Positions 41,208 through 50,004 of a stretch of DNA of 64,000 bases are shown piece by piece. The notes beneath the pieces were generated by a model that had not been told where the DNA came from, did not search any database, and was given only the letters and a program-made list of their open reading frames with translations. A program made the translations under genes and the position numbers. The stretch spans positions 1 to 64,000 of IMG/VR virus record IMGVR_UViG_3300044821_000131; one strand, given 5' to 3'. Position 1 is the first letter of the stretch; each line of letters begins with the position of its first letter.

Positions 41208-43357
41208 ATGAGCAATCCGCGTGATCCCCTTACACCTGAACAAATCAAGCACTGGCGTGACATGCTTGTCGGTATGTTCGGTCCTTGGGCCTTCATAATG
41301 CCAGAGGAGGACATCCAGCGTATGAGGGAGCATTTACAAAGTGATTTGGATTCACATGAAATCAATGACTCAAAAGAATAAACGGAAACGGTTGGTGTGA
41401 CTTGTTATGCCACGAGAACACTCAATGTCGTGCGAATGGCCAGAGGGTTGTAGCTGTGGAGCATCAGCGTGGAATCGATTGGAGCGTGAGCGTGACTGGT
41501 ATCGCTGTCGCGTAAAACTGTTGGAACAGCACAAGTCAATGCTCCGAGAGCCAGAACTAACGCTGGTATGTGATATCATGGCAAACGGCCAACTAATGCC
41601 CGACCCAGACGGGAAACGATATGGGCCTAACGCAGACTTGTCAGGCATATCGATAACAAAACTGACATAAAACATATGACTGAAACTCCACAAACCAAAA
41701 AAACTCTGCTGCCGAAATACGAAGACGGAAGCGGATATAGGATCGAAAGAGAACTGTGTGTCTTCTGCCACAAACCGCTGCTCGACTCATTCCACTTTGC
41801 CAGCGATGACGGTAAGCAACACTGGCACACATACTGCGCAAACAGAAAAGGCGTAACGTCCCGGATGAGCCGCCCGCGATAGGCGACTCACGAACACCAA
41901 AAGATTTATGATCAAAAAGAAAGCGTCAACGCGGGTTGGCTCCATCGGGCGGGTTATGCCTCAGTTGGTGATATGCGACCATCATGGGCATGACTACTGC
42001 GAGGGATGCCAACATAACGAACCCCACAAAGCAAACAGTGAGGACGACGGCGAACTCTGCACATGCGGCGGAGTCTGTGGGGCAAACGGGCCAAACTTCA
42101 ACGTGCGCTGCCTGCGACATAACGCCTCAAGCTGAGGCACGTCGGACTAAAGACTTTATGAAACCTGTGAAACCAAAAATCCGTAGCGATAAAAACAAAC
42201 CGTCCAACCGACGTTGCCTCCGGCGCGGTGTTAGGCGACACGATTGGATAAACGGCCCCGATATGATTCCGAAGCCTGTAAAAAAGGCGATCAAAGAATG
42301 GCGGGCCATCACAAGTCCAATGGAGAAAATCGGATTCATCCTGCACGCTTTCGACCCGACAATACAGTTCCGCTGTCCCGACAGTAACCGAGTGTTTGAT
42401 ATGTCAATAAGTGCCGTCAAACGCATAAATGCCGCCTTGTCGCCTAACGCCTCAAGCTGAGACATCGGCGACCTGCGATGTCCAGCAACCCAAAACCTTA
42501 TGCTCAAAACTGAAAGCGCCAATACCGATTGTTCTCCAGCGCCGGGTTCGGGTGCTGGCTTGGATAACTGAATGGGTCGAAGCAATCTGGAAGGCGTTTC
42601 GACCGCCAAAACGGAAGCGGCTGGAACTGCGGCTCTGCACATGGACTGCCGCAGACAAGCTGATTCGGGAAGGTGGCGGCGCTTGGACGGTAGCCGCCGA
42701 AGATGACCACAACATGGTGCTTGGGTGTGTGTGGTTGGAACGCCTGGAACAATATCCCGACTTCTCGAAGCAGCAGTCGAACGGTGAAGTCAGCGATGGC
42801 GGGACGCTGACTTCCGAATTGAAATCCAAACGCGAACCCGCCATTCGCTGAATTGTTATGGCACTAATACACGAAGAAACTGAACACGAGCTTGGAGCGA
42901 AACTGATGGTATCGGAACGCCAAGAAGGTGAAACCCGCGCCCCGTGGAAAATCATCACGCTCGACGCAGACCGATTCGAGAATCTAACACCAACGGAACT
43001 CCGAAAGCTCGGAAAGTGGCTCATACACCAAGGGAGGCGCATCGGAAGTGAATACAAGTCCAACGGTGCGTTGAAGGCCAAGAGCCATAACGAAAAGCTG
43101 ATCGACAGCGGAAGGAAATTATGAGCTTTAAAAACGGCGGATATAACAACGGGCTTGGTCGGCCAAAGGCGAAGAAGCTGTTCGCTCCGGCGCGTTGTTC
43201 TACGGCGTGGTTGAGCGTGGAATCCCGTTGGCCAGTCAAGGGTGAACTCGAAACCAAAAGATGCCTGACAATCCTAGACGCGGTAATAGAAGGAAAACGC
43301 GCCCTCCAATGTGGGGCGTGGCGCGTAACAATAACTCAGTGCAACGGAGCGCCGTAG
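41208..43357 (+). CDS. Small cassette ORFs (41208-41381, 41407-41670, 41676-41882, 41908-42135, 42158-42460, up to 42429-42851, 42858-43124, 43121-43357)
   Basis: One ORF per inter-attC segment; no function recognised. Confidence 0.6.
41851..41959 (-). other. attC site
   Basis: Plus strand GCGTAAC-gtcccg-gatgagccgcccgcg...cgcggg[t]tggctc[c]atc-gggcgg-GTTATGC. Confidence 0.82.
42117..42236 (-). other. attC site
   Basis: Minus strand GCCTAAC-ACCGC-GCC[G]GAGG-CA[A]CGTCGG...CCGACG-TG-CCTCAGC-TTGAGGC-GTTATGT. Confidence 0.88.
42442..42552 (-). other. attC site
   Basis: Minus strand CCCGAAC-CCGGC-GCT[G]GAGA-ACAATCGG...CCGATG-TCTCAGC-TTGAGGC-GTTAGGC. Confidence 0.85.
42776..42861 (-). other. attC site with a short deletion next to R''
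   Basis: Plus strand GTCGAAC-ggtga-agtcagcgatggcggg...cccgcca[t]tcgctgaatt-GTTATGG. Confidence 0.75.
43085..43203 (-). other. attC site
   Basis: Minus strand GTAGAAC-AACGC-GCC[G]GAGC-GA[A]CAGC...GCTG-TC-GATCAGC-TTTTC-GTTATGG. Confidence 0.82.
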
Positions 43358-43405
43358 AACAGTTAATTAAACCAACGTTGGTCGTTTAACTCATACGAAA
43401 GCCGA

Positions 43406-43434
43406 TTGCCAAACGGGGCCTCAGTAAGTAGTAT
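43406..43434 (+). promoter_or_regulatory. Sigma70-like promoter for the RNAP-fragment genes
   Basis: TTGCCA-N17-TAGTAT, 6 nt before ATG 43441. Confidence 0.6.
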
Positions 43435-43440
43435 TCAAAA

Positions 43441-44985
43441 ATGACCGACGACGTAGCCGCACCCCCGGGAGTGGAAATTACAGCTTGGGATGACTTTCCC
43501 AAGAAACGCCAGCAGATTCTCACTGGCGCTAAAACTGCCCTGCAAGAATCATTTCCCCAATCCTATGGCGGGGTGCGGCTTGAACTACACGACCTCGATT
43601 ACGACAATCCCAAGGAATTCACATTGTCGGAACAGAAGGACGCCCTGATGAAGAACCAGTTTCTCCATCACAAACTCAAGGGTACGTTAAAATTATTCGA
43701 TGAGAAAACCGGTGCGTTGCTGGATCAGAAAACTCAGACGCTCATGCGAGTTCCTTACCTTACCGAGCGTGGTACATTTCTACATAATGGTAACGAGATC
43801 ACCACCAACAGCCAGGCTCGGCTCATGCCGGGCATCTATACGCGGCGTAAGAATTCTGGTGAAATTGAGTCTCAGGTGAACGCCAAGCGTGGATCGGGAT
43901 CATCCTTCCGTGTACGTCTCGAACCCGAGTCCGGTTTGTTTAAGGTCGACATCGGTCAGAGTAGTCTGCGGCTTTATTCGTTGTTGAAAGATATTGGAGT
44001 GTCCGATCAGCAGATTGAGAAGACTTGGGGACCAGAACTGTTGAAGAAGAATCAGGACTCCTACGATGCCAGGGTGTTCGAGAAGGCTTACGATCGATTG
44101 GTGCGGCGTCCCGATCCGAAGGCCACGCGCGAGCAGAAGGTAGAGGCAATCAAGCAGGCTTTGGACAATACGCAGGTGGATCGGTCGGTGGTCATGAGGA
44201 CATTGCCGAATCTGTTCGCCACCAAGTTCTCCTCGATGTTGGCATTCGATCCTACCATGCCTCGGCCGCAGAGCGAGAAGAAGGAATTCAATCACGACGA
44301 TTGCCTGATGCTGGCGGAGCTGTTGAATCAGAAGTTTCATGCTGGCATTCCGTTGGATGCCCCGACCTCAGAGATCGTAGCCATGGTGATGGGTGAAATA
44401 CAGAAGCTCATGCCGTCGGTGAATGAGCAGATGCTGGCACAGACTGTAGGGCAACAGCAGAAAGAGGCGCGATCGAAACAAGGTTATCTGATGTTGAATT
44501 TCGAACCGGAAGACGCCATGAGGTTTTCCAAGTGGTCAAGGCAGAATATCCCGGATTCGAAACTGGGTGCGTCCGGACGTGAAGACACCCCGCATATCAC
44601 TTTGCGTTGGGGTATCAACACGGGTGATATTGGGCACCTGAAATCATTCTTCTCAGAACAGTCCCCAGTCCAAGCCACGCTCGGCGCTCTGACTCGATTT
44701 CCTGGCGTCGACGACGGAAACCAAGATGCACTAGTGGCGCCGGTAGAGTCCGAATCCATTCACAAGCTACACCATGCTGTCGTATCGACGTTTCATTCTC
44801 ATCTCGGACCCGTCAAGTTCAATACCTACCGGCCACATGTTACTCTAGCCTATTTAAGGCGTGGCGAGATGCCGGAATTGGAAGGTAACAAGGAGTTTCA
44901 TGGCCAGACATTCCAGTTGAAGAAGGTGGTGTATTCCAATCCTCGCACCAGCTCGTATATTGACATTCCGCTGGGTACAAATTAG
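43441..44985 (+). CDS. RNA polymerase beta subunit N-terminal fragment fused to a 2H phosphoesterase domain
   Basis: VPYLTERGTFLHNGNEITTNSQARLMPG matches RpoB IPLMTxxGTFIINGxERVVVSQLxRSPG; C-terminal PHITL (44593) and PHVTL (44836). Confidence 0.82.
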   Translation: MTDDVAAPPGVEITAWDDFPKKRQQILTGAKTALQESFPQSYGGVRLELHDLDYDNPKEFTLSEQKDALMKNQFLHHKLKGTLKLFDEKTGALLDQKTQTLMRVPYLTERGTFLHNGNEITTNSQARLMPGIYTRRKNSGEIESQVNAKRGSGSSFRVRLEPESGLFKVDIGQSSLRLYSLLKDIGVSDQQIEKTWGPELLKKNQDSYDARVFEKAYDRLVRRPDPKATREQKVEAIKQALDNTQVDRSVVMRTLPNLFATKFSSMLAFDPTMPRPQSEKKEFNHDDCLMLAELLNQKFHAGIPLDAPTSEIVAMVMGEIQKLMPSVNEQMLAQTVGQQQKEARSKQGYLMLNFEPEDAMRFSKWSRQNIPDSKLGASGREDTPHITLRWGINTGDIGHLKSFFSEQSPVQATLGALTRFPGVDDGNQDALVAPVESESIHKLHHAVVSTFHSHLGPVKFNTYRPHVTLAYLRRGEMPELEGNKEFHGQTFQLKKVVYSNPRTSSYIDIPLGTN

Positions 44986-44994
44986 TATTCGGGC

Positions 44995-45711
44995 ATGCCT
45001 AGTCATAGCAAAGCGCAGCAACGGGCGTTCGGAATGGCCGCCGCTCTCCAAGAAGGTAAACTTTCTCCCAGCAAGGTGTCTCCCAGTGTACGCCGCATTG
45101 CCCGGGATGTATCTCATACGGATGTGCGTCATTTCGCCACTACCAAGCACACTGGCCTTCCTGAGCATGTTGCCAAGCACGCTTCATATCTGAAGCCAAT
45201 GACGGCCGGCACGGCTGTAGGGGATTTTGGCAGACTTGAAGGCAACCCCAATACTTGGAACATGCCGATGCCGCGCTATAACCAAGCTCCTCCAGCGTGG
45301 GCACCCGCGGAGAAGCCCCTGACATTCATGAGCAGTGTCGGGCAGATGGGCAAAGGCTTATATCGTATGGGTATGGGTGGTGCATCCGCGGCTACGATTG
45401 GTCAAAATGGATCTCCTGGCGTGTTGGAGAACACGTTGGGCAATGCCGTACATGGAGTTGGCGATGTATGGTCGGGACAGGGCGCGTGGGGAAAAGTGCC
45501 TGGGTACATCCGGAAGCCTCTGGCACCGATTGCCGGGCCTTGGTATGGTGCTATGAACACCCCCGGGCAGTTCAGTGGTCCCTACGGCAGGTTCTTGGAC
45601 AACTCCGGTCAGGATCGTGCCATGGCTGCTGCTCCTTATACGTGGGCACAGCATAGTTGGCGCGATATGGTGAATGGCTGGAATCAATTCATGAACAATA
45701 AAATGCAGTAA
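44995..45711 (+). CDS. DUF3008-like N-terminus plus Gly/Met/Trp-rich C-terminus
   Basis: MPSHSKAQQRAFGMAAA...VRHFATTKHTGLPEHV resembles the DUF3008 pattern MPAKSKAQQ...FASTKxKGLP. Confidence 0.55.
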   Translation: MPSHSKAQQRAFGMAAALQEGKLSPSKVSPSVRRIARDVSHTDVRHFATTKHTGLPEHVAKHASYLKPMTAGTAVGDFGRLEGNPNTWNMPMPRYNQAPPAWAPAEKPLTFMSSVGQMGKGLYRMGMGGASAATIGQNGSPGVLENTLGNAVHGVGDVWSGQGAWGKVPGYIRKPLAPIAGPWYGAMNTPGQFSGPYGRFLDNSGQDRAMAAAPYTWAQHSWRDMVNGWNQFMNNKMQ

Positions 45712-47163
45712 ATGCTCACTTACGAAAAGATTTTCGCGCAGGCTAAAAAAGCTTTCGTCGAATCCAAATCTGCTACTGCCGAACCGGCTCAGCCCACAGA
45801 GGATACCGTTCCGGTCAATCCTGACGCGATCTTGGCTATCACCAGCAAGTTGTTAGCTGTGACTAGAGGTGAGGCGGATCCGGACGAACGTGATAGCCTT
45901 CAATTTAAAAGAGTTCACACTCCCGATAAACTGTTCGCCGAACGCATTAAGATGGATGCCCATAAACTGCGTAAGATCGCGATGCGTCGCGTTTCGCGTG
46001 TCCGCAATCTATCACCTATCGGTGTGGCGCATTTCGATCCTTACACGGGAGGATTGATCGTTGGGCATCCGTTATCCAGTCCTTTGGAAGAGACGAACCC
46101 GTTATCGCTTACGGAGCAGGCGAGACGCGTGACGCAGATGGGACCTGGTGGTATTCCTTCCTCGGATTCGATCACGGAAGAGGCACAATCTGTGTCTCCT
46201 TCGATATTCGGTTTCTTGTCAGCGATCGAAGGGCCGGAATGCTTTTCAGATGACACAGAGGTGTTCACTTATAACGGGTGGAAGTTTTGGAGTAGCATTA
46301 CAAATTCGGATCGTCTGGCCTGTCGTGATGAACACGGGCAAATGTTTTTCTCGGCCCCTAGTCGCCTAATAGCTGCACCTTATACTGGACCTATGGTCCA
46401 AGCTGACGCTCGGATGTTTCATTTAAAGGTTACGCCGAATCACAGGTTACTTGTCGCTAAGCACATGAGAAAATCACAAGTTCCCACGACTTGGTTTAAA
46501 ATTTTTGCCGGTGATTTTTCTGATCATAATGTTTTGCGATTCGACACCGGCAGCCTTCCATATTCTGGAAATTCTGTTTTAACATGGTCTCTACCCGATT
46601 ATGCTCTTGATAAGTTCATTCCGGAATACTTGTTCGATGCACCAATTTCTGCCCGACAGAAGTTGTTTGAAGCCCTACTTTTGGGAGATGGTCGGATTAA
46701 CAAAAACCACACCAATTTTACCAGCAGCAGCAAACAATTGGCTACTGATTTTGAACGTTTGGCCGTAGGCTTAGGACACACCACCAATTTTAGAAAATAT
46801 TTCGACAAGCGACCCCATGTACAAGCTTGGACTTATGAGATTAGTATTTTGAAGTTGCGCGAGCGCGTGGCGGCTAGAAAACCCAAGTCTGGTGTTGGCG
46901 GGCTGTTTTCGATAGTCGATTATTCTGGTATTGTGTATTGTGCCACGGTTCCCGGCGGCCTGTTGCTGACTCGACGTGGCGTATCTACCGGTGTATGGTC
47001 AGGCAATAGTGAACGCATCGGTGTAGATACGCGTCTCGCTTGGGGCGCTAACGTTGGCTCAGACGGAAAAATTTATCAGAAACTCTTGAATCGCAGGACT
47101 GGTCAGCATCAGTATGTGTCACCGGACGATCTCGTCGGTCGCACGGTTGGTATCCCTGAATAG
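45712..47163 (+). CDS. RNA polymerase beta subunit middle fragment, intein-containing
   Basis: DERDSLQFKRV (cf DDIDHLGNRR), LEETNPLSLTEQARRVTQMGPGGI (cf [24 protein letters not shown]), FGFLSAIEGPE-SERIG (cf YGRICPIETPEGPNIG). Confidence 0.88.
   Translation: MLTYEKIFAQAKKAFVESKSATAEPAQPTEDTVPVNPDAILAITSKLLAVTRGEADPDERDSLQFKRVHTPDKLFAERIKMDAHKLRKIAMRRVSRVRNLSPIGVAHFDPYTGGLIVGHPLSSPLEETNPLSLTEQARRVTQMGPGGIPSSDSITEEAQSVSPSIFGFLSAIEGPECFSDDTEVFTYNGWKFWSSITNSDRLACRDEHGQMFFSAPSRLIAAPYTGPMVQADARMFHLKVTPNHRLLVAKHMRKSQVPTTWFKIFAGDFSDHNVLRFDTGSLPYSGNSVLTWSLPDYALDKFIPEYLFDAPISARQKLFEALLLGDGRINKNHTNFTSSSKQLATDFERLAVGLGHTTNFRKYFDKRPHVQAWTYEISILKLRERVAARKPKSGVGGLFSIVDYSGIVYCATVPGGLLLTRRGVSTGVWSGNSERIGVDTRLAWGANVGSDGKIYQKLLNRRTGQHQYVSPDDLVGRTVGIPE
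46240..47007 (+). mobile_element. Intein (256 aa) with partly deleted LAGLIDADG domain
   Basis: Starts CFSDDTEV, VTPNHRL, only one ALLLGDG motif, ends VYCATVPGGLLLTRRG...WSGN, +1 Ser. Confidence 0.88.
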
Positions 47164-47192
47164 CACTATTTCTGACGGAACACTTAACAGTC

Positions 47193-47222
47193 ACGCGCAG
47201 TAATCCCTTACTGCGCGTTTTT
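47193..47222 (+). terminator. Intrinsic terminator hairpin, copy 1
   Basis: acgcgcagtaa-tccc-ttactgcgcgt-tttt; identical at 51424. Confidence 0.8.
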
Positions 47223-47229
47223 GCATTTT

Positions 47230-47901
47230 ATGAACCTATTATATCTAAAAGATTCAGACGGTAATTGGCGATCACATAGCTACGAAACGTTATCCGATTT
47301 GGCCGGGGAGTTTGCCAAACGTAACATAAAAATCGGCAATCGCGTGGCGATCGGCAATTACGTGACGCTCGGCAATTACGTGACGATCGGCAGTGACGTG
47401 ACGATCGGCAATTACGTGACGATCGGCAGTGACGTGACGATCGGCAATTACGTGACGATCGGCAATCGCGTGGCGATCGGCAATTACGTGACGATCGGCT
47501 ATGGCGTGACGATCGGCTATGGCGTGACGATCGGCAATCGCGTGAAGATCGGCAATGACGTAAAGATCGGCAATGACGTGACGATCGGCGATGACGTGGA
47601 GATCGGCGATGACGTGATGATCGGCAATTACGTGAGGATCGGCAATTACGTGGTTATTCCCAAAGCTGCGAACATCCAACTCCAATACGACCTGGTCACC
47701 ATCAACAACTTGGGATCCCGGAACGCGGCCTTATCTGCTGTTAAAATCAAGGATATCATCCATGTCGCGACTGGGTGCTTCAGTGGCACGATTGATGAGT
47801 TTGAGAAGAGGGTGAAGGAAGTGCATGAAGAGAGTGAGCATGGGATGCGTTACGGTCTGGTTATTGAAGTTATTCGTAAATGGTTTTCGGTACAACGGTA
47901 A
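47230..47901 (+). CDS. Hexapeptide-repeat protein, paralog 4 (18 repeats)
   Basis: 18 x 18-bp units at 47329-47652; shared N- and C-terminal blocks. Confidence 0.88.
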   Translation: MNLLYLKDSDGNWRSHSYETLSDLAGEFAKRNIKIGNRVAIGNYVTLGNYVTIGSDVTIGNYVTIGSDVTIGNYVTIGNRVAIGNYVTIGYGVTIGYGVTIGNRVKIGNDVKIGNDVTIGDDVEIGDDVMIGNYVRIGNYVVIPKAANIQLQYDLVTINNLGSRNAALSAVKIKDIIHVATGCFSGTIDEFEKRVKEVHEESEHGMRYGLVIEVIRKWFSVQR

Positions 47902-48372: not shown

Positions 48373-48408
48373 AAACGCCCGGATCGACTTTTGTCTTTCC
48401 GGGCGTTT
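48373..48408 (+). terminator. Hairpin
   Basis: aaacgcccgga...tccgggcgttt. Confidence 0.55.
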
Positions 48409-48420
48409 CTCTATTTAATA

Positions 48421-50004
48421 ATGAATTTTACTGAGAAATTGGCCGTCTATCTCAAGGCGGCGTATCCCATAATTGGCGTAGAGACGTACGAAGAAGGGCG
48501 TCTGTTGGAGACTGGAATTTATCCATTAAAAATGCCGGTTGAGCGCCGTCTATACCAGTGGGATTGCGCCACCGGTATGGTCGACACAACTGATCGAAAT
48601 AAGCCGGTGAAGCTGGACAAGACCGCGGATCCAATGGCTATGTTGGCCATCGTCTCTGGTAACGTTGAGAGCGCCATTTTCGTGCTAAAGGACATCCACG
48701 CGCATTTCAACAACGTCCGGCACATACGGATGCTTCGGTCTATGATTAAGACGTTATCGAACCGTAAGCAGACCATCGTGCTTGTGGCGCCGAGGCTGAA
48801 CCTTCCGTTTGATCTCCAGAAGGATGTTCAGATGATGGACTTTGCGCTGCCTACCAAAGCTGAATTGTCGGCCATGACAGAAACTTTTATCGAAACTTCG
48901 ATTCGGCGTAATGAGAACGCCGCGTACAAGGAGTTCCGTTTGTCGTTGTCCGATCGCGAGGCCATCGTCGAAGCAGCCACCGGCATGACTAGTATTGAGT
49001 TCTGTAACGCCTTGTCGTCTTGCTCCATTGGACAGAGCCAAGATAATGGCAAGCTTACGATGACCGGTGATTTCCCGAAACGCATCTTCGACGAGAAAAT
49101 TATTAATCTGAAGAATGGATTACTGGAGTACGTACCGGAGGCTGGTGGTTTCGACACGATCGGTGGTCTAACCCCAGTCAAGGAGTGGGCGAAACAACGC
49201 CGTCTCGGTTACGAGGAAGTCGCGCGCAAGGCGCACCTGCCATATCCTAAAGGCTGTCTCTTGGTAGGCTTGCGCGGATGCGGCAAATCGGTTCTGGCCA
49301 TGGCTATCGCTCAAGCATTCAACTTCCCGTTGTTCAAACTGGATATAGGCAAGATCTTCGGTAGCAAGGTGGGTGAATCCGAAGGCAATGTTAGAGAACT
49401 CATCCGTCTATTGGAAGGTCTCGGTCGTGCCGTCATCTACATGGACGAAATTGAGAAAGGTCTCAATAACAGTGCGGCGTCTGGTCAAGGTGATTCCGGC
49501 ACAGGTTCCCGGGTATTCGGGACTCTGATCTCTTGGATGGCCATTAAGAAGTGTCCGGTGTTTCTTATCGGTACAGCTAACAATATTGATGTCCTGCCAC
49601 CTGAGTTGATTCGTAAAGGTCGGTTCGATGAGATATGGTGGGTGGATCTGCCGACGTCCGAGGAGCGGGTGGATATCTTCAACAAACTGCTACAACACAA
49701 GTTTCAACGTGAGTTTGAGGTGACTGGCGTCAAAGACAAACTGATAACCAGCACCAAGGATTACAGTGGCGCCGAGATTGAGGCGGTTATTGAGGCTGCG
49801 TTGTATGAGATGTTGTCTTCCAAGGATAAGAATTTCAGGAAGATTCTGGAGTCGACGATCGAGCGTACCGAGCCACAGGCTCAGATCAATCCAGAGTATA
49901 TAAACAAGATGCGGGAGAAGTCTAAGGCCGGTTATCGCAAGGCTAATGATCCCGAAGTTCATAATGCAAGTGTATCAAACATGTATCGGAAGGTTCAGTT
50001 ATGA
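48421..50004 (+). CDS. AAA+ ATPase, Ycf46-like
   Basis: Degenerate first domain (IFVLKDIH), Walker A GLRGCGKS, Walker B IYMDEIEK, TANNIDVLPPELIRKGRFDE. Confidence 0.9.
   Translation: MNFTEKLAVYLKAAYPIIGVETYEEGRLLETGIYPLKMPVERRLYQWDCATGMVDTTDRNKPVKLDKTADPMAMLAIVSGNVESAIFVLKDIHAHFNNVRHIRMLRSMIKTLSNRKQTIVLVAPRLNLPFDLQKDVQMMDFALPTKAELSAMTETFIETSIRRNENAAYKEFRLSLSDREAIVEAATGMTSIEFCNALSSCSIGQSQDNGKLTMTGDFPKRIFDEKIINLKNGLLEYVPEAGGFDTIGGLTPVKEWAKQRRLGYEEVARKAHLPYPKGCLLVGLRGCGKSVLAMAIAQAFNFPLFKLDIGKIFGSKVGESEGNVRELIRLLEGLGRAVIYMDEIEKGLNNSAASGQGDSGTGSRVFGTLISWMAIKKCPVFLIGTANNIDVLPPELIRKGRFDEIWWVDLPTSEERVDIFNKLLQHKFQREFEVTGVKDKLITSTKDYSGAEIEAVIEAALYEMLSSKDKNFRKILESTIERTEPQAQINPEYINKMREKSKAGYRKANDPEVHNASVSNMYRKVQL

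Follow-up and report, generated by a model that had tools for sequence, protein, structure and literature searches.

An RNA polymerase subunit carrying a predicted 2H phosphoesterase domain in a soil jumbo phage

Known relatives of the fusion

Acb1 proteins (Pfam PF23474) are phage-encoded anti-CBASS nucleases of the 2H fold, with an HxT/HxT catalytic tetrad (PMC9117128). They include the T4 and FBB1 enzymes (7t26/7t27) and the Burkholderia phage BCSR5 phosphodiesterase (9q2g), and are free-standing proteins of about 150-165 aa. The ThpR/LigT RNA 2',3'-cyclic phosphodiesterases and Usb1, which share the fold, are cellular, free-standing proteins. 2H domains also occur in phage polyvalent proteins, where several conflict-related domains drawn from a shared pool are combined in one polypeptide, packaged in the virion and delivered with the DNA (Iyer et al. 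2017, PMC5512222). That study lists 2H, InPase and lysozyme among the phage-type polyvalent domains, notes that this 2H type is never linked to RNA ligases, and predicts degradation of nucleotide signals or RNase activity. The described carriers are MuF, portal or giant effector proteins. In eukaryotic RNA viruses, the rotavirus VP3 C-terminal 2',5'-phosphodiesterase and the coronavirus and torovirus ns2-type PDEs are 2H domains attached to the RNA-synthesis machinery, via a capping enzyme or polyprotein, which degrade 2-5A, an immune signal specific to animal immunity. Finally, the virion RNA polymerase of the Bacillus jumbo phages AR9 and PBS1 carries an HD phosphohydrolase, of unknown role, fused to a beta fragment (PMC7598289, PMC7824862).

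In a 204-kb soil phage, an intact 2H phosphoesterase domain is fused to a fragment of the phage's own RNA polymerase. As in AR9 and PBS1, a phosphohydrolase is joined to one piece of a split multisubunit polymerase, albeit with a different fold (2H rather than HD), on a different subunit piece and terminus (in AR9 and PBS1, the N-terminus of the beta C-fragment), as a swappable rather than a fixed domain, and in a different phage group, the AR9 group having two polymerase sets. The carrier is a polymerase fragment rather than a MuF, portal or giant protein.

The beta-N–2H gene and its neighbourhood

The window analysed is a stretch of 64,000 nucleotides, positions 1 to 64,000 of IMG/VR record IMGVR_UViG_3300044821_000131. 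The gene, P0001, occupies 43441..44985 on the + strand and encodes 514 aa (57 kDa); all features given below for the window lie on this strand. The initial annotation had noticed two HxT motifs C-terminal to an RpoB piece and after a KEA motif, and this observation is confirmed. The motifs PHITL (aa 384-388, 44590..44604; H385, T387) and PHVTL (aa 465-469, 44833..44847; H466, T468, in the context YRPHVTLAY) are the only two HxT/S motifs in the protein, and KEA (aa 341-343, 44461-44469) lies at the junction. A megablast search of the locus against phages found nothing, whilst 130 homologues of the protein were recovered by other searches; the names of those sourced from NCBI were uninformative.

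The N-terminal part is the beta1-beta2 (protrusion and lobe) core, aa 1-261 (43441..44223), and aa about 8-265 are conserved in all homologues. It matches phrog_24349 (positions 44-149), phage beta genes by tblastn, and bacterial beta by Foldseek, including the isolated Mtb B1-B2 domains (4kbj, E 9e-11). A predicted disordered tether follows at aa 262-280 (44224..44280), where pLDDT falls below 50 in the full-length AlphaFold2 model (overall pLDDT 87.4, pTM 0.45) and distant homologues diverge. The C-terminal segment of beta-N, aa 281-342 (44281..44466), is formed by three helices (285-299, 309-323 and 329-345) and ends in a loose K-[ESQ]-A-[AGS] junction motif, of which KEA is the local form. 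Unfused homologues end within a few residues of this point, so that the 2H domain is fused directly to the natural C-terminus of beta-N.

The 2H domain comprises aa 343-514 (44467..44982), a length of 172 aa. Pfam PF13563 matches at 38.2 bits (E 1.8e-9), or 41.3 bits in a further profile search, against a cutoff of 27, and phrog_755 matches at 9e-11. Both histidines and the first threonine are invariant in 98 relatives that are only 24-40% identical to this domain, whilst the second threonine is nearly invariant. The AlphaFold2 model of the domain (pLDDT 96.1, pTM 0.90) has the bilobed alpha/beta 2H fold, with Z scores of 12-15 to more than 40 solved 2H structures covering most of the domain, and of about 15 to LigT, CPDase and Usb1. 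The domain thus satisfies the motif, profile and fold criteria of the 2H superfamily.

The fusion is not an assembly error, a possibility for which no evidence was found and which is considered extremely unlikely. The ORF is uninterrupted, and more than 30 diverged homologues, assembled independently, share the architecture; fifteen or more from other assemblies cover at least 96% of the protein and keep the 2H domain. The source run contains a single zero-difference contig, and a contig from an independent rhizosphere metagenome is identical over 44320-44614 and bridges the junction.

Downstream, a variable-slot gene at 44995..45711 (P0003, 238 aa) encodes a DUF3008 N-terminal motif (PF11450, 32.4 bits) followed by a Gly/Trp/Pro-rich tail; a homologous motif occurs nearby but at other positions in relatives. 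The middle fragment of beta (P0002, 483 aa; end of lobe plus fork, Rpb2_2 and Rpb2_3) lies at 45712..47163, was identified by Pfam and PHROG matches, and shows conserved synteny in relatives. It is interrupted at 46240..47007 by a 256-aa intein with Hint and LAGLIDADG endonuclease matches, Cys1, a terminal Asn and Ser+1, inserted after GPE of the conserved beta motif; an intein-free relative, L012, aligns contiguously across aa 176/432. The remaining pieces of the polymerase lie elsewhere in the genome (G000, the phage genome): beta-C at 92605-94524, and beta' pieces at 105718-107766 and 117096-118940. This is the only detectable multisubunit RNA polymerase of the phage, with beta split into three genes and the detectable part of beta' into two. 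No sigma-70 region 2 match was found in the genome. The motif TAGTATTC upstream of P0001 and P0003 gave 3 matches against 0.95 expected, but 5 of 100 shuffles did as well, and it is not significant.

Interchangeable domains and the affinities of the 2H domain

P0001 is one case of a wider pattern, no description of which was found. Across this clade of phages of roughly 200 kb, beta-N (at its C-terminus) and the beta' N-piece (at its N-terminus) carry interchangeable domains, alone or in arrays: 2H, NUDIX, InPase (PF18823), a weakly matched HAD-type phosphatase, LigD 3'-phosphoesterase, lysozyme and SET. Of 89 tails on beta-N, 23 have 2H, 10 InPase and 10 NUDIX, with one lysozyme that co-occurs with NUDIX. 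P0001 itself has only two modules, but relatives have three or four, in the arrangements beta-N-InPase-2H, beta-N-NUDIX-2H, beta-N-lysozyme-NUDIX, NUDIX-2H-beta' and InPase-2H-beta'. In this genome the beta' piece at 105718-107766 carries NUDIX plus a probable HAD domain. The combination of several conflict-related domains in one polypeptide, one of the criteria for polyvalent proteins, is thus present in these fusions, and the same partner domains, InPase, lysozyme and NUDIX, occur.

Repeated independent capture of 2H by beta-N was initially suspected, since the 2H tree forced at least 4 label changes. However, nine of the presumed outgroup proteins proved to be beta-N fusions themselves, and after relabelling the AU test did not reject a single origin (p = 0.08), so this claim was abandoned.

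The 2H domain belongs to a large phage clade (2781 relatives) that is common inside giant multidomain proteins and lies between Acb1 and LigT; it is the same sequence clade as the 2H domains of phage polyvalent proteins. Of the 149 best representatives, 51 are longer than 1500 aa, and many of the best relatives lie inside proteins of 1500-6158 aa. The closest cultured match is in a 1362-aa protein of Tunturi_5, encoded between the head-tail connector and a tail gene, and BFVD matches lie in phage proteins annotated as structural or capsid-morphogenesis.

The suggestion that the domain is Acb1-like receives mixed support. The best solved match to the family profile is an Acb1 enzyme (9q2g, E 3.6e-8), Acb1 proteins show the highest sequence identity among the structural matches (17-19%), and the second-motif context, Y-x-[PA]-H-x-T-L-[AS]-Y, is shared with 9q2g and 7t26, whereas the two LigT-like proteins aligned have H-x-T-L-G-R where this family has H-x-T-L-A-Y. 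P0001 nevertheless scores only 19.7-23.4 bits on Pfam Acb1, below the 27-bit cutoff and over positions 57-112 of 144, although some fused relatives reach or approach this cutoff (P0198 at 27.9 bits). Nor does P0001 reach the cutoff for LigT_PEase (PF02834, 16.6-19.5 bits against 23.3), and the family matches Acb1 and LigT models about equally (68 versus 60 of 98). A structural comparison with Acb1 and LigT, proposed in advance as a check on this assignment, did not separate the candidates: Foldseek against the PDB, VIA-align and AFDB Swiss-Prot rank LigT/ThpR, CPDase and Usb1 at or above Acb1. ThpR/LigT and Usb1 are the closest overall folds and are of similar domain size (Z 14.8-15.1, TM up to 0.74, 10-18% identity), followed by Acb1 (Z 12-12.7) and the rotavirus, coronavirus and torovirus enzymes (Z 11.2-12.4), torovirus proteins also being among the BFVD hits. 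The alignment to 7t26 covers only chain residues 61-111, and the base-stacking aromatics (Y12, W74, F107 and W147 in FBB1) and C-terminal lid of Acb1 were not compared; an invariant aromatic, F420, aligns with F or W in the two Acb1 structures but was not mapped reliably to the published numbering.

Possible roles of the tethered hydrolases

The analysis establishes with high confidence that the domain is a real, selected and active-looking 2H enzyme fused to a real polymerase subunit, that the helical end segment plus the 2H domain hang from the beta core by a predicted disordered loop, and that interchangeable domains occur on two subunits across the clade; what follows on function is inference. 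In the preferred, albeit tentative, model the polymerase acts as a carrier in the manner of polyvalent proteins. It would probably be packaged in the virion and enter with the DNA, so that its hydrolases are present from the start of infection. The 2H domain would then use its two His-x-Thr motifs for metal-independent cleavage of phosphodiester bonds in nucleotide immune signals (cyclic di- or trinucleotides, or 2'-5'-linked oligonucleotides), as Acb1 and the viral 2',5'-phosphodiesterases do, whilst the neighbouring NUDIX, InPase and HAD domains would remove pyrophosphate- or phosphate-bearing signals or the products of that cleavage. No substrate was tested, and neither cyclic-nucleotide cleavage nor protection from CBASS was assayed. 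Evidence for packaging is indirect, and packaging is not shown for this phage. A lysozyme on a polymerase subunit is hard to explain unless the protein crosses the cell wall, the AR9 virion polymerase provides a precedent, and in Arash, a distant cultured phage with this kind of beta, beta and beta' are among the most abundant proteins in virion mass spectrometry. However, Arash is only about 34% identical over 132 aa, has an unsplit beta and has no member of this 2H family at E <= 0.01, and its authors caution that abundant enzymes may contaminate particle preparations. In the present genome the polymerase genes sit among replication genes or genes of unknown function rather than in a structural module, and PHROG annotation of the neighbours of the other polymerase genes identified almost nothing, giving no hint about packaging. 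Tethering could equally mean that proximity to transcription is what matters.

The main alternative, possible but less favoured, is co-transcriptional RNA-end processing, in which a ThpR/LigT-type 2',3'-cyclic phosphodiesterase held next to the polymerase, together with the HAD-type 3'-phosphatase, NUDIX (5'-end pyrophosphohydrolase) and InPase (pyrophosphate removal), heals or trims RNA ends cut by host RNases or conditions the polymerase's transcripts. This fits the nearest folds and several companion domains, HAD_PNKP (weak matches), LigD 3'-phosphoesterase with a ligase OB domain, NUDIX and InPase, which act on nucleic-acid termini or polymerisation by-products and, in the first two cases, point to nucleic-acid ends rather than small signals. 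The presence of the same domains on two subunits also suggests that attachment to the polymerase itself is selected. By contrast, the genome has no Rnl2-type RNA ligase (PF09414) and no RtcB, Rnl1-type ligase and polynucleotide kinase not having been searched for; this 2H type is reported never to be linked to RNA ligases; lysozyme and SET domains in the same slots have nothing to do with RNA ends; the second motif lacks the LigT-like context; and the beta lobe lies on the downstream-DNA side of the polymerase, away from the RNA exit channel. An offensive role as a Usb1/Mpn1-like, metal-independent 3' exoribonuclease or endoribonuclease attacking host RNAs early in infection is unlikely. Usb1 structures are the top Foldseek PDB matches (E about 1e-6, TM 0.68-0.70; Z 14.9), and RNase activity is one of the two predictions in PMC5512222, but identity to Usb1 is only 10-13%, the profile search of solved structures returned Acb1 and LigT-like proteins rather than Usb1, and such an RNase would presumably endanger the phage's own transcripts.

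It is similarly unlikely that the fusion lacks functional coupling, having arisen by loss of a stop codon at a hotspot for accessory genes, with the domain working independently, perhaps after proteolytic release. The interval between beta-N and beta-mid does hold different small genes in each relative, including a cell-wall hydrolase and DUF3008 genes; inteins and a group II intron reverse transcriptase also invade these genes; and fused and unfused forms are interspersed on the beta-N tree. However, the fusion persists across lineages whose beta-N cores are only 35-52% identical, with catalytic residues invariant, and a local hotspot cannot explain fusion of the same domain families to beta' at a different locus and the opposite terminus. 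The interpretation in the initial annotation, a counter-defence or RNA-processing enzyme delivered with or cleaved from the polymerase, is supported in part. The range of functions proposed is appropriate and delivery is plausible by analogy, but cleavage has no support, since no conserved cleavage motif distinguishes the junction and KEA is only the loosely conserved end of the last beta-N helix. An internal ribosome-binding site at KEA was likewise rejected, since this genome hardly uses Shine-Dalgarno sequences (14 of 210 gene starts). The clade-wide exchange of domains on two subunits was not recognized in that annotation.

Phage 2H enzymes such as Acb1 are known as small free proteins and polyvalent effectors are known on MuF, portal or giant carriers, whereas here the carrier is the transcription enzyme itself, in a pattern extending to two subunits and at least seven domain types across hundreds of uncultured phage genomes of about 200 kb. 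In its most far-reaching form, which is possible but less likely than not, this clade has turned its only multisubunit polymerase into a packaged and injected 'polyvalent RNAP', whose swappable hydrolase arrays (2H, NUDIX, InPase, HAD, LigD-PE, lysozyme) disable nucleotide-based host immunity, and help entry, at the moment transcription starts; this would be a previously undescribed class of counter-defence architecture. The analysis also identifies a bacterial-like, split, intein-bearing phage polymerase lineage that no cultured close relative represents. If the domains are counter-defence enzymes, the clade is a natural catalogue of signal-degrading modules with an internal control, since the same slot holds different domains in related phages, and it would show how phages make sure such enzymes are present before any gene is expressed. 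If they instead act on RNA ends, this would be the first bacterial-type RNA polymerase with built-in end-healing activities. Either way, the pattern offers a testable explanation for the unexplained HD domain on the AR9 virion polymerase.

The polymerase subunit and its fusion

The gene of interest is an open reading frame at 43441..44985 (+ strand, 514 aa; P0001) in a 204,257-bp IMG/VR phage record with direct terminal repeats, of which the window is the first 64 kb. The two H-x-T motifs described in the initial annotation are real, and its observation is upheld: PHITL lies at aa 384-388 (nt 44590-44604) and PHVTL at aa 465-469 (nt 44833-44847), and these are the only HxT/S motifs in the protein. 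The KEA motif is at aa 341-343, at the junction. The C-terminal 172 aa match the 2H superfamily model Pfam PF13563 at 38-41 bits against a cutoff of 27, and phrog_755 at 9e-11. The N-terminal part is the beta1-beta2 (protrusion and lobe) fragment of a multisubunit RNAP. It matches phrog_24349, a full-length beta profile, and the beta genes of Salmonella phage Arash and Vibrio phage D69, whilst the full-length model matches bacterial beta chains and the isolated Mtb B1-B2 domains (4kbj, E 9e-11).

The genome has one detectable RNAP set, which is in pieces. Beta-N is encoded by the gene described here and beta-mid by 45712..47163. In coordinates of the whole genome (G000), beta-C lies at 92605-94524 (PF00562, E about 1e-52 to 1e-54), the beta' N-piece at 105718-107766 and the beta' C-piece at 117096-118940. 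Beta-mid is interrupted after its conserved GPE motif by a 256-aa intein with a LAGLIDADG endonuclease (46240-47007; Cys1, terminal Asn, Ser+1). Of the related loci, L011 has the same intein, whilst L009, L010 and L012 lack it. No sigma-70 region 2 was found in the genome. The surrounding window encodes replication and nucleotide-metabolism genes: thymidylate synthase, primase, DNA polymerase, UvsX, helicases and topoisomerase. Among 211 greedy gene calls in the whole genome, 186 are on one strand, and only 14 of 210 gene starts have a Shine-Dalgarno-like sequence, the upstream regions being A/T-rich instead. This suggests a host that initiates translation without Shine-Dalgarno sequences, such as Bacteroidota; there is no other indication of the host, and the habitats are peat and rhizosphere soil. 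The octamer TAGTATTC lies 4-5 nt upstream of the ATG of both P0001 (43429-43436) and the following gene, P0003 (44983-44990). With 3 matches in the window against 0.95 expected, and 5 of 100 shuffles doing as well, it is not significant on its own.

The fusion is real and selected. At least 15 homologs from other assemblies cover 96% or more of the protein and keep the 2H domain at 42-52% overall identity, and nine more fusions or fragments were found among the 2H domain's own relatives. In 23 fused tails that are only 24-40% identical to this one, H385, T387 and H466 are invariant, and the same holds across 98 family members. The source peat metagenome covers the locus in one contig with no differences. 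An unrelated rhizosphere run has an identical 295-nt contig (44320-44614) that bridges the junction; comparison of 43300-47300 with a 2019 rhizosphere metagenome from a different study than the peat source sample (run X2) showed a near-identical phage at low depth.

Unfused beta-N proteins end within a few residues of the junction, so the domain is appended to the natural C-terminus of the subunit. The full-length model (pLDDT 87.4, pTM 0.45) has four parts: a confident beta core (aa about 19-261), a disordered loop (262-280), three helices (285-345) and the 2H domain from aa 347. The initial annotation had allowed that the enzyme might be cleaved from the polymerase. The KEA motif, however, is the loosely conserved K-[ESQ]-A-[AGS] end of the last helix; it also occurs in InPase-fused forms, and nothing marks it as a cleavage site.

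Relationships of the 2H domain

The model of the domain is very confident (pLDDT 96.1, pTM 0.90) and has the 2H fold. Structural comparison with Acb1 and LigT, which had been proposed in advance as a test of the Acb1-like identification, does not settle the subfamily. VIA-align gave Z of 14.8-15.1 for ThpR/LigT, CPDase and Usb1, and 12-12.7 for Acb1 (7t26, 9q2g) and the penguinpox cGAMP phosphodiesterase, and Foldseek searches of the PDB and AFDB Swiss-Prot gave the same picture. Sequence points somewhat more towards Acb1. The best solved matches of the family profile are the BCSR5 Acb1-type phosphodiesterase (9q2g, E 3.6e-8), followed by archaeal LigT-like proteins (6e-5 to 2e-4) and then FBB1 Acb1 (6e-4). 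The second-motif context Y-x-[PA]-H-x-T-L-[AS]-Y is shared with both Acb1 structures, whilst the two LigT-like proteins aligned read H-I-T-L-G-R. The protein itself gives only 19.7-23.4 bits with the Acb1 model PF23474, below its cutoff of 27, and at the Pfam level the family is equidistant: 98 of 98 members match PF13563, 68 match Acb1 and 60 match LigT_PEase. The interpretation offered in the initial annotation, a possibly Acb1-like counter-defence or RNA-processing enzyme delivered with or cleaved from the polymerase, is supported only in part.

An exhaustive search found 2781 relatives of the domain. Of the 149 best, 51 are domains inside proteins longer than 1500 aa (up to 6158 aa) and 38 are solo proteins of 250 aa or less. 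The closest cultured match is inside gp321 of Tunturiibacter phage Tunturi_5, a 1362-aa "NUDIX" protein encoded between the head-tail connector and a minor tail protein, and matches in BFVD include large Gordonia and Microbacterium phage proteins annotated as structural or capsid-morphogenesis. This is the 2H type described by Iyer et al. in virion-packaged polyvalent proteins, where it was noted never to be linked to RNA ligases and was predicted either to degrade nucleotide signals or to act as an RNase (PMC5512222). Consistent with this, no Rnl2-type ligase and no RtcB were found in the genome.

Variable domains on two polymerase subunits

The C-terminus of beta-N is a variable slot. Of 89 homologs with a tail, 23 carry 2H, 10 InPase (PF18823) and 10 NUDIX; one carries DUF6624 and one a group II intron reverse transcriptase, a lysozyme occurs once on a tail that has NUDIX as well, and about 45 have no Pfam match. 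Another 31 homologs are unfused. The tails can be arrays, as in the relatives P0198 and P0230 (beta-N-InPase-2H), P0167 (beta-N-NUDIX-2H) and P0063 (beta-N-lysozyme-NUDIX). On the beta-N tree, 2H-fused, unfused and InPase-fused forms are interspersed, whilst on the 2H tree a single origin of all fused domains is not rejected (AU p = 0.08). One or a few old captures followed by losses and replacements is therefore the conservative reading.

Gene order is conserved, with beta-N followed by a few variable small genes and then beta-mid. The small genes include a cell-wall hydrolase and DUF3008 proteins. Here the gene in this interval (P0003, 44995-45711) encodes a DUF3008 N-terminal motif of about 60 aa followed by a Gly/Trp/Pro-rich low-complexity tail; the motif, for which no function is known, recurs in relatives at other positions near beta-N and, in PHROGs, inside larger proteins. 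The RNAP genes are followed by genes for a hexapeptide-repeat (left-handed beta-helix) protein (47221-47901) and an AAA+ ATPase (48391-50004; phrog_8638, E 1e-109). An AAA ATPase follows further downstream in three of the four relatives' loci, as it does here, and the AAA gene keeps its position downstream of beta-mid in two of the four examined (L009, L012).

The same toolkit also decorates the N-terminus of the beta' N-piece. In this genome the 682-aa protein (G000 105718-107766, outside the window; L014:82-2130 in the locus numbering) begins with a NUDIX domain (PF00293 at 24.1 bits against a cutoff of 21.1, and E 6e-51 to a profile built from the NUDIX tails of beta-N fusions). There follow a probable HAD phosphatase (DFDGV...T...K...DD motifs readable in the sequence; NT5C only 15.9 bits), a (TPQV)x6 repeat linker, and beta' with its DFDGD motif. 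The first ~240 residues of a normal beta' appear to be missing from this piece. Relatives show NUDIX-2H-beta', InPase-2H-beta', InPase-HAD_PNKP-beta' and NUDIX-HAD_PNKP-beta' (both HAD matches below the Pfam cutoff), NUDIX-DUF5661-beta' (the NUDIX match just below its cutoff), beta'-LigD phosphoesterase-ligase OB, SET-beta', and bare forms. The LigD-type 3'-phosphoesterase is C-terminal to the beta' piece in P0312 and P0376 and is followed in P0312 by a DNA-ligase OB domain, which was not looked for in P0376; this may be a nucleic-acid ligase fused to RNAP. Where beta-N and beta' were paired by the equal size of the contigs carrying them, the phages whose beta-N is bare carry InPase or NUDIX on beta'. 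In some related phages (P0334, P0336, P0337, P0341, P0344, P0345, P0361, P0362, P0391 and P0392) a beta domain (PF00562) and the beta' catalytic domain (PF00623) lie in one polypeptide, so the pattern of RNAP splitting and fusion differs widely within the clade.

Possible functions of the appended domains

The analysis establishes an intact-looking 2H enzyme, a real RNAP subunit, a real and conserved fusion between them, and a clade-wide combinatorial decoration of two RNAP subunits; what the domains do is inferred. The main rival to the reading favoured below is RNA-end processing next to the polymerase, which appears unlikely. It rests on the ranking of LigT and Usb1-like folds, and on the companion domains that act on nucleic-acid ends (HAD_PNKP, LigD phosphoesterase). 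The favoured reading, which is itself tentative, is that the polymerase acts as a carrier and that the 2H domain degrades nucleotide signals. The domain families are those of virion-delivered polyvalent proteins, and lysozyme and SET domains in the same slots fit a set of activities needed at entry better than any single transcription-linked chemistry. In Arash, beta and beta' are among the most abundant proteins in virion mass spectrometry, alongside a cell-wall hydrolase, a pyrophosphatase, a pyrophosphohydrolase and a phosphoesterase (PMC10585845). The link to Arash is however distant (34% identity over 132 aa, unsplit beta, no 2H of this family), and packaging was not examined for the phage described here. 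The virion RNAPs of AR9-like phages carry a fused HD phosphohydrolase of unknown role (PMC7598289). The experimentally characterised virus-encoded 2H enzymes Acb1, the poxvirus cGAMP PDE, coronavirus ns2 and the rotavirus VP3 C-terminal domain all degrade immune nucleotides, and VP3 is itself fused to virion transcription machinery.

No earlier description of this arrangement was found. Term searches of a comparative jumbo-phage survey (PMC7824862), an RNAP review (PMC7598289), a 2026 review (PMC13282480) and a NAD/ADPr survey (PMC9503650) revealed no fusion of 2H, NUDIX or InPase to RNAP subunits, the only fusion mentioned being the HD domain of AR9, and source databases label the protein "2'-5' RNA ligase" or leave it unnamed. 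Both of its sides have known counterparts, since phage 2H and polyvalent effectors have been described, as has a split phage RNAP with a fused phosphohydrolase. What was not found described is a 2H domain of the polyvalent-protein type on a subunit of a split phage RNAP, within a clade that decorates two of its RNAP subunits in combinatorial fashion.
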